From Andalucia godoyi And28 (lineage: Eukaryota; Protista; Jakobida): a DNA stretch of 64,000 bases. The first letter of the stretch is position 1. Each line of letters starts with the position of its first letter. Of the stretch, positions 2,981 through 62,859 are shown piece after piece. The notes under the pieces are model-generated. The model was not told the origin of the DNA. It made no database searches and saw only the letters and a program-made list of their open reading frames with translations. The translations under genes and the position numbers were made by a program. The stretch covers positions 160,438 through 224,437 of the forward strand of contig VRVR01000028.1 of NCBI GenBank assembly GCA_009859145.1. Direction: 5' to 3'.

Positions 2981-3063
<83 letters not shown>
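2981..3063. repeat. (GA)n microsatellite directly upstream of the ProRS ATG
   Basis: About 41 GA units ending 7 nt before ATG 3071. Confidence 0.97.
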
Positions 3064-7687: not shown

Positions 7688-8129
7688 CCGCTGATTAATA
7701 ACACGCCATTGTCATGCATACGGAAGGAAGTACACATAAACAGACATGGTCAATACTGGCCGACAGTAGCACGTTTTGTTTCACAGGAATTCATGCTTAC
7801 GCACGCTCGGCCAGAATTCAGCCGGTGACACAGGCTCCGCATTTTCGACACTCTTTAGCGCAGCATCCGTAGCCATCTATTCTATCATTCGTTCTTTTTG
7901 CAACGTTTGTTCCATAGGGCGACCGAGTATCGCGAGCGGCGCAAGCAAAGTGTCTGCATGTCCCGCGTGTAGCTCACAGATTGATCGAGATTGGGAACGG
8001 AGCGCGGAACATCTATCTGAAGAATGCCGTGAGGTGTGTTGGGAGCCTATCCCCTTCCCGGCAACGAGATGCAAGTTTGAATATGTATATCTACGAATAG
8101 ACATGCATGTTCAGTGTATAGTGTAGGCG
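7688..8129 (+). repeat. Dispersed element family A, copy A1 (23-nt insertion at 7807-7829)
   Basis: Collinear and highly similar to 25800-26214 and 34702-35138, and to the reverse complement of the ends of 51094-51527. Confidence 0.92.
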
Positions 8130-16045: not shown

Positions 16046-16386
16046 TTCTCTCCTCTCGCGAAAAAAGAAGCAGCAAAAGAAAAGAAAAGAAAAGATAAGA
16101 AGAAGGCAAGAAGAAAGACAAGAAGAAAGACACTGCCAAAAAAGTCTCTTCTCCTCTCTGAAGTCCAATACAGTTGAACCACGAGGTTTTTTTGTTTTGT
16201 TTTTGTTTTGCAGGAGCACAAGCTTTTGAGTGGATTCTTACCTTTTGTTTTCATCATTTTTATTAATTATTATTATTATTTTCATTTAAAACATTCTGGG
16301 TACATTTAAAATCATCGAACAGACCGTGCATGTATCCACGGTGTAAAAAGGGGGAAGCGTAGATGGTAGAGAACGAAAAAAGTTGC

Positions 16387-22220: not shown

Positions 22221-22268
<48 letters not shown>
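22221..22268. repeat. (CA)n microsatellite between the convergent EXO1 and P5CR 3' ends
   Basis: 24 CA units. Confidence 0.97.
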
Positions 22269-23280: not shown

Positions 23281-23752
23281 GCCGCTGCCACTTAATGCGA
23301 TATGCCGAAGTAGTCTAAAGCACACGAAAACAAGCACACTGCCACGCGCCATGCGCATGCGTTTGTTATCTTAAGCAGCTCCGTCACACGATGCCCGATT
23401 CGTTTCGCCCCCATTTTGATCATGAAGTCCCTATAAACACACGCCGCCGCGTTGCATTCTCGCACAGCGACGCTCACGACTTATTTTTATTGTTATTCTT
23501 ATTGTCCGTGCAACGCACCATGCACGTCACGCCCGCAACGCTGCGCAGGACCTGTGACAATCTCCACCGCCGCCGGAACGATCGACCGCGATTGGAACGG
23601 CGCGCGCAACATCTATCTTAGGAACGTCTCTCATGCCGAGGGGCGTGTGGGGGCCTGCCCCCCTTCCCAGTCAATGCCATGCATGTTGCTGGGTTGCAAC
23701 ATCGATTATGGGTGATCAGCGCTGATCATCCGTGGTTAGTGCGCAATGTAGG
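23281..23752 (+). repeat. Dispersed element family B, copy B1
   Basis: Near-identical to the reverse complement of 59975-60439; its 3' ~170 nt is homologous to the family A 3' core. Confidence 0.92.
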
Positions 23753-23947
23753 AGCGCAAGCCCGCAGTCTCTTGTCTGCAGAACAAAGAGAAACGAGGGT
23801 AAAAAGCCACAACGAGGACGACAACAAAGAACGAATCATACAAACCAATCATTTTACGCACTGCTCCGCGGGCTATGTAATTAATAAGATGGGAGTTCAA
23901 AAGGTCTAAAGGGTGCTGACGGAGAGGGCATTCCGGATCACCACAGC

Positions 23948-25799: not shown

Positions 25800-26214
25800 G
25801 TTGAATAATAACACGTCATTGTCATGCATACGGGAACTATCCATAAACAGACACGGTCAATACTGGCCGACACTAGCACGTTTGTTTCACAGGGGAATTC
25901 GTGCTTGCGCACGCACAGGCTCCGCATTTTCGACTCTCTTTAACGCAGCATCCGTAGCCATCTATTCTATCATTCGTTCTTTTTGCAACGTTTATGCCAT
26001 AAGGCGACCGAATATCGCGAGCGGCGCAAGCAAAGTGTCTGCATGTCCCGCGTGCAGCTCACAGATTGATCGAGATTGGGAACGGAGCGCGGAACATCTA
26101 TCTGAAGAGTGCCGTGAGGTGTGTTGGGAGCCTATCCCCTTCGCGGCAACGGGATGCAACACTGAATATGCATATCTACGAATAGACATGCATGTTCAGT
26201 GTATAATGTAGGCG
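25800..26214 (+). repeat. Dispersed element family A, copy A2 (no insertions, closest to consensus)
   Basis: Aligns end to end with A1 and A3. Confidence 0.92.
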
Positions 26215-34303: not shown

Positions 34304-34460
34304 GCCGCTTGCCAAAAACAAGAATCATGGTTGGTCATCATCGGCGAAGCTGTCACCGAAGACATATCCAAAGCCACATGCTTCTTTGATTTTCATTCAT
34401 TTAGGGACGAACACCAGCTCTTCAATGCAGACTGCTCTGCACCAGAGATGCGTCGCAATC
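34304..34460 (+). repeat. Degenerate dispersed repeat family C, copy C1
   Basis: Shares blocks aagctgtcaccgaa.aca.atccaa(a)gccacatg and cacca.ctcttcaatgcaga.tgct with 62720-62859; an extra block 34618-34648 matches 62955-62984. Confidence 0.75.
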
Positions 34461-34701: not shown

Positions 34702-35138
34702 GCCGCTGAATAATAACACGTCATTGTCATGCATACGGGAGTATGCATAAACAGACACGGTCAATACTGGCCGACACTAGCACGTTTGTTTCACAGGGGA
34801 ATTCGTGCTTGCGCACGCACAGGCTCCGCATTTTCGACTCTCTTTAACGCAGCATCCGTAGCCATCTATTCTATCATTCGTTGGTTTGGTTTTTTGGTTT
34901 CACTTTTTGCAACGTTTATGCCATAAGGCGACCGAGTATCGCGAGCGGCGCAAGCAAAGTGTCTGCATGTCCCGCGTGTAGCTCACAGATTGATCGAGAT
35001 TGGGAACGGAGCGCGGAACATCTATCTGAAGAATGCCGTGAGGTGTGTTGGGAGCCTATCCCCTTCCCGGCAACGAGATGCAAGTTTGAATATGCATATC
35101 TACGAATAGACATGCAGGTTCAGTGTATAATGAAGGCG
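34702..35138 (+). repeat. Dispersed element family A, copy A3 (20-nt G/T-rich insertion at 34883-34902)
   Basis: Aligns with A1 and A2. Confidence 0.92.
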
Positions 35139-47223: not shown

Positions 47224-47752
47224 TGCACTCGAAAGGCTAAAGTAGTCATGCAGTGACTCTGAGCAAGGGACTGTGTGAGCGAGTGAGAGAACCGAAGCCA
47301 AGTCTGAACGCACGAAACATCACACACGCTTGTTTATTTCCCAACCCAGGAACGTAGCTGGTGTCCTGAAAACCCTTGTGATCTCGACAAAAAGCCAGCC
47401 ATCGCCCCAGCATCAACCATCAAGCCCTCTCCTCCAGAATCAAACCCATGCATCCTCAAGCATCAAGCATACCTGTTTTGACAAGCTGACTGCTGTACCG
47501 CCCGCCACTTTCCGTTACGCGGGTCTCTCAATTCCGAATTCGGGGTTCTCTCTCGTCCAGTTATTGCATGTTGATCGAACGCTCTCTTTTCTCTTTTTCT
47601 TTCGTGTTTATAATTTTCTTCTCCTTTTATTTTACTCTCCTCCTTTTTCTTTTGTCACATTTCATTTTCTTTTCCTTTGCAATTTCAACAGGAGAGGAAA
47701 AGGGAGACGTACAGAGCACAGAGAGACAGAGAGTGAGTGAGAGAGTGAGTGA

Positions 47753-47755
<3 letters not shown>

Positions 47756-47797
<42 letters not shown>
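47756..47797. repeat. (GA)n microsatellite just upstream of the CDK1 ATG
   Basis: About 21 GA units. Confidence 0.95.
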
Positions 47798-47800
<3 letters not shown>

Positions 47801-51093: not shown

Positions 51094-51527
51094 CGGCTAC
51101 ATTATACACTGAACATGCTGCATATCTACGAATAGACATGCATATTCAATCTTGCATCCCGTTGCCGCGAAGGGGATAGGCTCCAACACGCCTCACGGCG
51201 CTCTTCAGATAAATGTTCCGCGCTCCGTTCCCAATCTCGATCAATCGGTGAGCCACTTTCTCAGCGTGACACGTTGTTCCTGAGAAGGGTGCATTTTTTT
51301 GATTCTGACGGCCCTGGCAGCAGGCGCTTTCGTGTCCTCAGTTGCAGCGATTGATGCACCTGGAGATACGAGATCGTGTCTTGGCAGTGCGCTGAACGAA
51401 TGATGGATGGCTACGCGCAAGCACGAATTCCTGTGAAACAAACGTGCTACTGTCGGCCAGTATTGACCGTGTCTGCTCATGTATACTCCCCCGTATGCAT
51501 GACAATGACGTGCTATTATTCAACGGC
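51094..51527 (-). repeat. Dispersed element family A, copy A4, inverted, with substituted middle (51254-51393)
   Basis: 51094-51253 and 51394-51527 match family A ends; the interior is unrelated. Confidence 0.88.
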
Positions 51528-51598
51528 ATGATTCATCTCGTCACTTCGGTTGGAGACAAGACCTTTCAGATGTCCGACGGTGCGCATTTCGGATGATG

Positions 51599-51764
51599 GA
51601 TCGGACATGATTATGGGACGGTGCGGGCAACATTTATCGTAGGTTGGGGCCTGTCCTCTTTCCCCGCCCCTTTCCGTCAATGCACAACACAGTCCGGGTT
51701 GCACCACTGGTTGATGACCCGTCGCCAGCAATGACTGTGAATGTATGATTAGTGTGCAATGAGC
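51599..51764 (+). repeat. Degenerate core-only copy (B3) of the shared A/B 3' module
   Basis: acggtgcgggcaacatttatcgtagg, tggggcctg, gtcaatgc, gggttgca and attagtgtgcaatg occur in the same order as in B1. Confidence 0.7.
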
Positions 51765-52056
51765 GCGAATTTGTAGGTTGGCGCGCGAATCCGAGGGAAA
51801 AAAATATAACTCGATGGGGGAAACACTTGACGAACGACGAATTTACGATGGGGCAACTGGGACATCAACATTCAAAAGAAAAGAAAAAAGAACAGCATGA
51901 CAGCATGCATAAGGTGTGCACGATGAATATGAGGAAAACTCTTGAGAGCGAAGGAGCAGCGAAACACGGGTGGGGTGGGCTAAAGGAGAGACTGGGGGGC
52001 ACCTCGGGGCAAGACAAAACAAACACGCACTTATGTACAGTAGCGACGAAAGGGAT

Positions 52057-54326: not shown

Positions 54327-54434
<108 letters not shown>

Positions 54435-54662: not shown

Positions 54663-54735
54663 GCCTCTGTAGCTTAGGCGGTAGAGCGCAACACTAGTAA
54701 TGTTGAGGTCGTCGGTTCGATTCCGACCGGAGGCA
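54663..54735 (+). tRNA. tRNA-Thr(AGT)
   Basis: Cloverleaf: acceptor GCCTCTG/CGGAGGC, D-arm GCTT/GAGC, anticodon arm CAACA-CTAGTAA-TGTTG, T-arm GTCGG-TTCGATT-CCGAC; T-run downstream. Confidence 0.97.
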
Positions 54736-59717: not shown

Positions 59718-59974
59718 TTCATACATTGATGCTGTTATTTATGTTCTAGGATGTGTTCGTAATTCCCCCCCTTGCTCTCTGTTTGTGGTGTTGTCCGTGT
59801 TGTGTTGCGCTTGTTGTAAAATTGGTTTGCTCCATTTCTCTTTCGTCACCATCCGTCAAAACGTCACCCCTGTGCAGGTGGCTCTATGTACGTAGGAATA
59901 CGTCTGCACCCGGGAAGCAGAAAGCAGTCCCTGGAAGCGGTTTCGAAATTCAAAACTCTCAAACACTGCCGTGT

Positions 59975-60439
59975 GCCTACGTTGTACACTAACCACGGAT
60001 AATCGTCGCTGATCACCCATAATCGATGTTGCAACCCAACAACATGCATGGCATTGACTGGGAAGGGGGCAGGCCCCAGCACGCCCCCTCGCCATGAGAG
60101 ACGCTCTTAAGAGAGATGTTGCGCGCGCCGTTCCAATCGCGGTCGATCGTTCCGGCGGCGGTGGAGATTGTCACAGGTCCTGCGCAGCGTTGCGGGCGTG
60201 GCGTACATGGTGCGTTGCATGGACAATAAGAATAACAATAAAAATAAGTCGTGAGCGTCGCTGTGCGAGAATGCAACGCGGCGGCGTGTGTTTATAGGGA
60301 CTTCATGATCAAAATGGGGGCGAAACGAATCGGGCATCGTGTGACGGAGCTGCTTAAGATAACAAACGCATGCGCATGGCGCGTGGCAGTGTTTTTGCGC
60401 TCTAGACTGCTTCGTCATATCGCAATAAGTGGCAGGGGC
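59975..60439 (-). repeat. Dispersed element family B, copy B2 (inverted)
   Basis: Reverse complement aligns end to end with B1. Confidence 0.92.
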
Positions 60440-62719: not shown

Positions 62720-62859
62720 ACCACTCGCCAAAACATGAATCATTATTAATCATTGGTTAAGCTGTCACCGAAAACAGATCCAAGCCACATGTTTTTTTGT
62801 TTTTATTTATTTGGGGGCGAGCACCACCTCTTCAATGCAGATTGCTGGTCATCGCAATC
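62720..62859 (+). repeat. Degenerate dispersed repeat family C, copy C2
   Basis: Aligns with 34304-34460. Confidence 0.75.

Follow-up and report, generated by a model that had tools for sequence, protein, structure and literature searches.

A subterminal hairpin in Andalucia godoyi repeats as the probable guide-proximal stem-loop of a Fanzor2/IS607-type omega RNA

A 24-nucleotide (nt) hairpin near the right end of a dispersed repeat in the jakobid Andalucia godoyi And28 is very probably part of the guide-proximal long stem-loop of a Fanzor2/IS607-type omega RNA (reRNA) scaffold. The window analyzed is a 64-kb stretch of contig VRVR01000028.1 (positions 160,438 to 224,437, forward strand), in which the repeat copy carrying this hairpin is here called B1. 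A BLAST comparison of the region with the window returned seven copies of the repeat, assigned to family A (A1 to A4), family B (B1 and B2) and a third lineage (B3) (Table 1). TnpB and Fanzor elements generally encode a guide RNA whose scaffold overlaps the nuclease gene at its 3' end and stops where the element does, on the right; the adjoining flank serves as the guide. For IS607 and Fanzor2 elements, the reRNA has been described as three stem-loops and a pseudoknot that uses guide-adjacent nucleotides (PMC10711439). The scaffold of the mimivirus nuclease ApmFz2 is about 205 nt long and builds its pseudoknot from its last five nucleotides; about half of this RNA is invisible in the structure, with long stem-loops projecting off the protein (PMC11832414).

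A sequence-only reading of the window had proposed that the hairpin is conserved in position and length between the two families while being rewritten in sequence. The coordinates and letters behind this proposal are correct, and the hairpins of families A and B are equal in size and position with unrelated stem sequences. In B1, positions 23709-23732 read TGGGTGATCA-GCGC-TGATCATCCG and form ten pairs, two of them G.T, as befits the 10-bp stem that had been claimed for both families; in A2, however, 26169-26192 (TGCATATCTA-CGAA-TAGACATGCA) form nine pairs and one A.C mismatch. Folding revealed that both 24-nt hairpins are the apical part of a longer stem-loop, termed S-c, which spans 42 nt with 17-18 base pairs (bp) and ends 13 nt short of the element boundary. 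In B1, S-c has 18 bp, of which six are G.U. The motifs GA.TAT and TG.T.AGTG, previously taken for shared anchors flanking the hairpin, are indeed present, but they pair with each other and constitute the basal stem of S-c. Folded as RNA together with the tail that follows it, S-c gave z-scores of -5.6 in A2, -3.0 in B1, -2.4 in B2 and -2.9 in A4, with dinucleotide shuffles as the null here and in the other RNA folds. B1 and B2 are 93% identical across about 450 nt, and their flanks diverge outside these bounds; within the hairpin, one G-C pair has become G.U, one loop-closing pair is gone and one loop base is altered, much as described earlier. For B3, a third hairpin sequence had been reported, and a 9-bp bulged hairpin does occur at 51707-51728. 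Its S-c region, however, measures 50 nt, and the 76-nt stretch including the tail folds like its shuffles (z = -0.49); B3 is therefore a decayed copy rather than an equivalent third solution. The small upstream hairpin that had been said to covary does so, with GGGA..TCCC in family A and GGGG..CCCC in family B (pair 94/101: AU 4, GC 2).

The identity of the repeat was traced through its coding remnants. In each copy, the decayed remains of a coding tail, C..C..(I)DRDWNGARNIYL(K/R), lie about 140-170 nt before the right end. In B1, the profile-matching remnant is the C-terminal piece ..C..C..IDRDWNGARNI.., and the tail of this broken frame aligned with the C-terminus of a full-length profile of 32 relatives (hhalign 97.3%, E = 1.6e-11). 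The N-terminal piece of B1 matches two annotated proteins, ANDGO_03800 and ANDGO_08534, which are the sole close protein matches of the repeat. Both carry the RuvC-I block LDPGVRTF, and the corresponding block of the profile aligned with ANDGO_03800 at 99.6%. With ANDGO_08534 as the query, exhaustive HMMER searching retrieved 798 relatives at E <= 0.001; the loci that encode relatives lie largely on giant-virus contigs. Among eight full-length relatives, Pfam recognized Cas12f1-like_TNB and OrfB_IS605 in all eight and HTH_OrfB_IS605 in five (families PF12323, PF01385 and PF07282). The short open reading frames of the window gave, on their own, a marginal Pfam match (PF07282, E = 0.11), and the link came via profile comparison. 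The relatives' profile matched mimivirus L79 (ApmFz2, a Fanzor2; PDB 9b0l) at E = 7.6e-66, compared with 1e-21 for ISDra2-type TnpB. In two of the viral loci, L040 and L010, a TnpA with MerR-HTH and Resolvase domains lies directly upstream of the Fanzor2 gene, which is the IS607 arrangement. Judged by these sequence comparisons, the parent lineage falls in the Fanzor2 clade, not in Fanzor1 or the IS605 TnpB proteins.

The seven window repeats are independent deletion derivatives of such a Fanzor2/IS607-type TnpB element. What survives in them is the left end, fragments of the nuclease gene and a final stretch of 140-170 nt that begins at the RuvC-III DRD codons and reaches the right end. In family A, a C-terminal piece of the frame is left, with a single frameshift and one or more large internal deletions. 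The B copies retain only short N- and C-terminal frame pieces; each has a single frameshift and a single large internal deletion. The internal segment of A4 differs and possibly includes more C-terminal coding sequence (weak tblastn match, E = 0.44). A4 and B3 lie head-to-head on opposite strands, about 35 nt apart (51094-51780), and one may have inserted into or beside the other; on the far side of A4, nothing more of the B3 coding sequence was seen.

The retained right ends share one layout, in which the DRD codons are followed by S-a, S-b, S-c and the tail. Across the window copies and their relatives, 139-203 nt separate the DRD codons from the boundary. S-a reads GGGA-GCCUA-UCCC in family A and GGGG-GCCUG-CCCC in family B; of S-b, family A has only 4 bp left, with GCAA as the loop. 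The unpaired 13-nt tail reads ..AAUGUAGGCG in A2 and ..AAUGUAGGAG in B1, and the motif AAUGUAG within it is common to B1, the A copies and three viral loci (L040, L032 and L106). The tail complements the S-a loop (GCCUA/UAGGC in A and GCCUG/UAGGC in B2), RNAalifold favours a long-range helix between the two, and relatives have complements of their own at these places: GAUUC/GAAUC in L010, GCUAC/GUAGC in L035 and GUUAU/AUAAC in L015. This pairing is a candidate for the pseudoknot.

Table 1. Repeat copies, RNA modules and coding remnant in the window (window coordinates).
Feature	Position	Strand	Description
Candidate omega RNA (reRNA) scaffold of B1	23584-23754	+	DRD codons to right boundary; layout as in PMC10711439 and PMC11832414
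S-a of B1	23649-23664	+	Small hairpin; loop GCCUG complementary to tail UAGG(C)
S-b of B1	23666-23693	+	Hairpin CCCAG..CUGGG
S-c of B1	23700-23741	+	Long hairpin; 23709-23732 is its apical part
Tail of B1	23742-23754	+	13 nt, single-stranded, CGCAAUGUAGGAG; ends at boundary
Broken Fanzor2/TnpB-like frame in B1	23520-23715	+	Tail ..TIDRDWNGARNIYLRN.. matches profile C-terminus
A1, family A	7692-8129	+	S-c 8075-8116, tail 8117-8129
A2, family A	25801-26214	+	S-a 26126-26138, S-b 26142-26153, S-c 26160-26201, tail 26202-26214
A3, family A	34707-35138	+	S-c 35084-35125, tail 35126-35138
A4, family A	51094-51524	-	S-c 51107-51151, tail 51094-51106
B1, family B	23281-23754	+	Internally deleted, non-autonomous; borders +/- about 4 nt
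B2, family B	59974-60432	-	S-c 59987-60028, tail 59974-59986
B3, 5'-truncated third lineage	about 51560-51780	+	Coding tail, small hairpin, 50-nt S-c region, interrupted tail

Similarity among the copies stops at the end of the 13-nt tail. The viral relatives agree with this limit: L035 and L036 match exactly as far as ..GUAGCGG but are unrelated beyond it, and the right-end boundary was therefore placed directly after the tail. The dinucleotide CG stands at both borders in four of six copies, the other two having TG/CG and CC/CA. At the left borders (near 7690, 25799, 34705, 23283, 51526 and 60434), ..GCCG| was seen in three of six, besides ..ACCG|, ..GCCC| and ..GGTG|. This border motif could be a target or transposon-adjacent motif or a crossover dinucleotide. 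A small hairpin-like motif, CGGTCAATACTGGCCG, is conserved in the left part of A1-A4 (25853-25870 in A2).

The same module recurs in giant-virus relatives of the element. The stem order of the window copies is found downstream of intact genes in L040, L032, L002, L010/L016/L021, L035/L036 and L015, and L106 has the same S-b, S-c and tail, its module lying at the start of the fetched stretch, where the gene was not seen. The counterpart of S-b in these loci is CCCGUG..CACGGG. Together, S-c and the tail measure 55 nt in A1-A3, B1, B2 and L040, 58 nt in A4, 54 nt in L106 and L002 and 53 nt in L032; the viral modules are at L040:3990-4044, L032:3981-4033, L106:69-122 and L002:7677-7730. In L040, L032 and L106, the basal stem and tail are near-identical to those of the window copies (e.g., ..UGUUCAAUGACUAAUGUAGCGG vs ..UGUUCAGUGUAUAAUGUAGGCG) and the apical stem differs, whereas L002 shares length and structure more than sequence. 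L040 was the only module-bearing locus examined for its neighbours, and an IS607-type serine recombinase stands beside its gene. In a second viral clade (L010, L016 and L021), the last stem has only 11 bp and shows compensatory changes of its own. The near-identity of basal stem and tail hints at element transfer between giant viruses and the protist.

Covariation of S-c was examined in an alignment of ten sequences (A1-A4, B1, B2, L040, L106, L032 and L002), for which the figures are descriptive. In this alignment, 89.2% of pair cells are paired, compared with 30-38% in a slid control in which the 3' partners were moved by 1-3 columns. Both sides are altered in 9 of the 19 S-c pairs, and the covariation score is 0.506 against 0.203 for shuffles, none of 500 reaching the observed value. 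Pair 8/38, in the basal half of the stem, is U.G in all ten sequences (23707/23734 and 26167/26194 in the window). When S-a and the loop-tail pairing were included, the seven window copies had 87.5% of cells paired vs 32-44% when slid. Searches relied on a 55-nt model, R2; a full-length model, R1, to which B3 matches at 122.8 bits, caught mostly the conserved coding part of relatives and gave poor alignments of distant loci. Of 36 matches from a DNA pattern scan of viral contigs, four were real, and two of those were already known. MAFFT misaligned S-a and S-b between the families, and no column-wise claims are made for these two hairpins across lineages. For S-c, the structure has been kept by compensation across lineages.

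Compensation can also be mimicked without selection when template switching or hairpin inversion keeps the two arms complementary, and the window offers an example of such an event. In A4, the apical 24 nt read exactly as the reverse complement of 26169-26192 in A2 and 35093-35116 in A3, with an adjoining 3-nt insertion, which looks like a single inversion of the palindrome. The inversion alters six positions and keeps every pair, and it turns the A.C mismatch of A1-A3 into G.U in the sense RNA; palindrome-specific mutation can thus rewrite a stem in the absence of selection. Template switching, however, generates perfect Watson-Crick arms, and these stems contain one to seven G.U pairs on the sense strand. 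It would also have to produce hairpins of equal length at an equal distance from the boundary in protist and giant-virus elements, and the small hairpins covary as well. As a general account of the rewritten stems, an origin free of selection is highly improbable.

The selected molecule is the sense-strand RNA. The one to seven G.U pairs per stem always fall on the nuclease-sense strand, and of 16 sequences, 14 give a better fold for the sense than for the antisense strand. For the B1 segment, the sense RNA reaches -20.2 kcal/mol (z = -3.0), the antisense RNA -8.6 kcal/mol (z = -0.8) and single-stranded DNA (ssDNA) -5.7 kcal/mol (z = -0.68), a value that 52 of 200 shuffles equal or better. The left ends of A and B form no significant hairpin on either strand (z from 0 to +1.5). 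RNA rather than ssDNA follows from the sense-only G.U pairs, the ssDNA z-score, the lack of left hairpins and the Fanzor2/IS607 protein lineage. The earlier proposal of selection on single-stranded structure is therefore sustained in that structure, not sequence, is kept between A, B and the giant-virus relatives, and amended in that the molecule is RNA.

By the same evidence, it is extremely unlikely that the hairpin is an ssDNA transposition signal of the kind used by IS200/IS605 elements with their Y1 transposase or by the 3' ends of Helitrons, with both of which the earlier reading had suggested a comparison. The position would suit such a signal, the hairpin being subterminal and 13 nt from the right end, and TnpB also occurs in IS200/IS605 elements, as does Fanzor1 in Helitrons (PMC3627910). 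Yet the B hairpin is unstable as ssDNA, the left ends lack a counterpart, and the G.U pairs, the invariant U.G included, would be mismatches in DNA. The termini also disagree with a Helitron: the ends read CTGAAT.../CTGCCAC... and ...GTAGG(CG) instead of 5'-TC...CTRR-3', and the flanks are ..CCG| and |CG.. rather than A|T. All coding remnants are TnpB-like, although no search was aimed at RepHel. For IS200/IS605, no Y1/HUH TnpA was found in the window, and the relatives examined carry a serine recombinase, which acts on double-stranded DNA.

A third possibility is a duplex palindromic site, bound by a recombinase or regulator with which each family co-evolved. As DNA, the apical part forms a good palindrome in A as well as in B (TGATCAGCGCTGATCA in the latter), the right end of IS607 elements is also read by TnpA (PMC10711439), and the left ends of A and B differ too. 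Beyond the central 16 nt, however, the B arms match through G.U only, which makes the duplex DNA a poor palindrome (9 of 15 positions, by eye). A stem whose length and U.G pair are kept and whose sequence is free has the signature of an RNA helix, and a strand asymmetry in folding would be meaningless for a duplex, which renders this reading very unlikely. Least of all can probability be granted to a small regulatory RNA precursor, for instance a microRNA-like product of a miniature inverted-repeat transposable element, unrelated to the nuclease. A 17-18-bp stem in several intergenic copies and a weak Rfam resemblance to microRNA precursors (21.6 bits vs a gathering score of 81) might suggest one, but this score lies far below threshold and is typical of any hairpin. 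The same stem also follows intact viral Fanzor2 genes, and a precursor would leave the conserved tail and the boundary unexplained. On the points given, the Helitron, IS200/IS605, duplex-palindrome, template-switching and microRNA-like candidates were all rejected.

For the preferred reading, in which the hairpin belongs to an omega RNA, a mechanism can be sketched from the ApmFz2 complex and the work on IS607. In an active element, the retained stretch would be transcribed in the sense direction, giving an RNA with S-a and S-b as small hairpins, S-c as the long one and a 13-nt tail. At the end of this tail, the final bases would probably pair with an upstream loop as a pseudoknot, and the RNA would run on into the flanking DNA, which would guide the nuclease. 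Contacts with the protein would be made by the tail and by the base of S-c and would account for their conservation, and the invariant U.G pair is a likely point of contact. The distal half of S-c would project into solvent, where only its helical form should matter. The apical stems of A, B and the viral elements could be rewritten by compensatory change because the helix there would be solvent-exposed.

The omega RNA of Fanzor2/IS607 elements is an already known kind of element, and its closest characterized relative is the ApmFz2 RNA (L79; PDB 9B0L; PMC11832414). The two agree in protein lineage and in a scaffold that shares the gene's 3' end and extends as far as the right end, and the ApmFz2 RNA likewise has long stem-loops, with disordered distal parts, and a pseudoknot from its last few nucleotides. 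They differ in that the ApmFz2 scaffold has 205 nt, compared with roughly 145-170 nt estimated here, and the window elements are without a nuclease gene; the flanking dinucleotide is GG in ApmFz2 and seemingly CG in the window, where the pseudoknot partner is only a candidate. The likeness is one of protein lineage and layout. Similarly, the reRNA of IS607 TnpB (ISXfa1 and Fanzor2; Yoon et al., 2023, PMC10711439) shows three predicted stem-loops along with a guide-adjacent pseudoknot. IS607 elements recombine at matching dinucleotides (PMC10711439), and the giant-virus relatives share their TnpA/TnpB gene pair. The window copies, by contrast, are non-autonomous, reside in a eukaryote and have no TnpA gene or remnant in the window.

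Nuclease-less derivatives are known from other systems. The palindrome-associated transposable elements (PATEs) of the IS200/IS605 group lack protein genes and keep their ends and scaffold, like the window copies (Meers et al., 2023, PMC10055086). In another instance, Chlamydomonas reinhardtii has 20 extra guide-RNA copies that are equally nuclease-less (Jiang et al., 2023, PMC10530073). Any activity of PATEs, of the Chlamydomonas copies or of the window copies would need a nuclease in trans. Their parents differ, being bacterial Y1-type elements for PATEs, a Fanzor1 element in Chlamydomonas and a Fanzor2/IS607-type element in the jakobid. The hairpins of IS200/IS605 elements and Helitron 3' ends resemble the window hairpin in their subterminal position close to a right or 3' end, and for some Helitron2 ends compensatory changes are on record (PMC3627910); however, those hairpins act as ssDNA with Y1 or RepHel and have defined termini, none of which was found here, although no search was aimed at RepHel. 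No link between Fanzor and Andalucia was found in the literature searched.

Several observations weigh against the omega RNA assignment or narrow its reach. The covariation sample represents only about four independent lineages, and R2 found no more members in 79 viral and 80 metagenome Fanzor2 loci. In the window elements, Rfam returned no family at gathering score, giving sub-threshold generic hairpins only. We infer sense transcription of the scaffold in A. godoyi from the ApmFz2 and IS607 work. The pseudoknot matches comprise 4-6 bp and are equalled by shuffled tails in 3-75% of trials, and the loop-tail pairing is broken in B1 and A4; the true partner may have been lost with the 5' end of the scaffold, as the partner in the mimivirus RNA sits there. 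The 64-kb window contains no intact Fanzor2 nuclease gene, and only two annotated A. godoyi proteins match, both fragmentary (the two ANDGO proteins named above). A tblastn search found no TnpA serine-recombinase gene or remnant in the window, an absence to be expected because the copies are non-autonomous derivatives. Copies of one family differ by 5-10% in S-c and by 2-7% elsewhere in the element, and their stem changes are mostly disruptive, comprising two wobble-preserving transitions and several pair-breaking changes, with no pairwise compensation. There is no sign of present-day constraint on S-c.

These within-family data bear on when selection acted. Since changes within families are uncompensated and B3 and the tails have decayed (the tail is mutated in A4 and B1), the compensation belongs to the divergence of the parent elements, when the nuclease was present. 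The contrast drawn earlier between selection and neutral repeat decay is accordingly half right: compensation took place between parent lineages, but the copies within each family decay neutrally. The resident copies look like relics in neutral decay. Subtelomeric "transposon/viral-like" scaffolds were omitted from the published A. godoyi assembly (PMC7050145), and for this reason an intact parent elsewhere in the genome is possible. We consider it unlikely that the A and B elements are a eukaryotic counterpart of PATEs, with omega RNAs that are transcribed and used in trans by a Fanzor2 encoded elsewhere, for example on the omitted subtelomeric scaffolds or in an infecting giant virus. If this were the case, non-autonomous elements would parasitize RNA-guided homing in a jakobid.

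With the hairpin assigned to an omega RNA, the puzzle of a "rewritten" hairpin is explained by a known mechanism. The assignment would extend the hosts of Fanzor2-derived elements to a jakobid (Discoba) and document guide-RNA-bearing deletion derivatives in a eukaryote, and the near-identical basal stem and tail in giant-virus contigs would speak for element traffic between virus and host. It also singles out the invariant U.G pair and the conserved tail as the parts of the omega RNA likeliest to contact the protein. From a methodological perspective, an RNA stem and a DNA transposon hairpin can be separated from sequence by the strand asymmetry of G.U pairs, DNA and RNA fold statistics and protein remnants.

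The surrounding window is gene-dense and largely intron-less, with genes for Pex16, prolyl-tRNA synthetase, a ClpB/Hsp104-like ATPase and kinases, and the proteins it encodes occur unchanged in EukProt. This compactness and the scarcity of introns fit the described 20-Mb genome of A. godoyi (PMC7050145). A tRNA-Thr(AGU) at 54663-54735 is the only Rfam or ARAGORN match in the window. Long (GA)n/(CA)n microsatellites occupy intergenic positions at 530-645, 2981-3063, 47720-47798, 54327-54427 and 22221-22268, and the "D1" family returned by the repeat search consists of these microsatellites only. Besides these, a conserved block of about 55 nt follows a T-rich tract and AG at 34382-34436, 62792-62846 and 16186-16232 (+), and looks like the common intron 3' end and exon start of paralogous genes.

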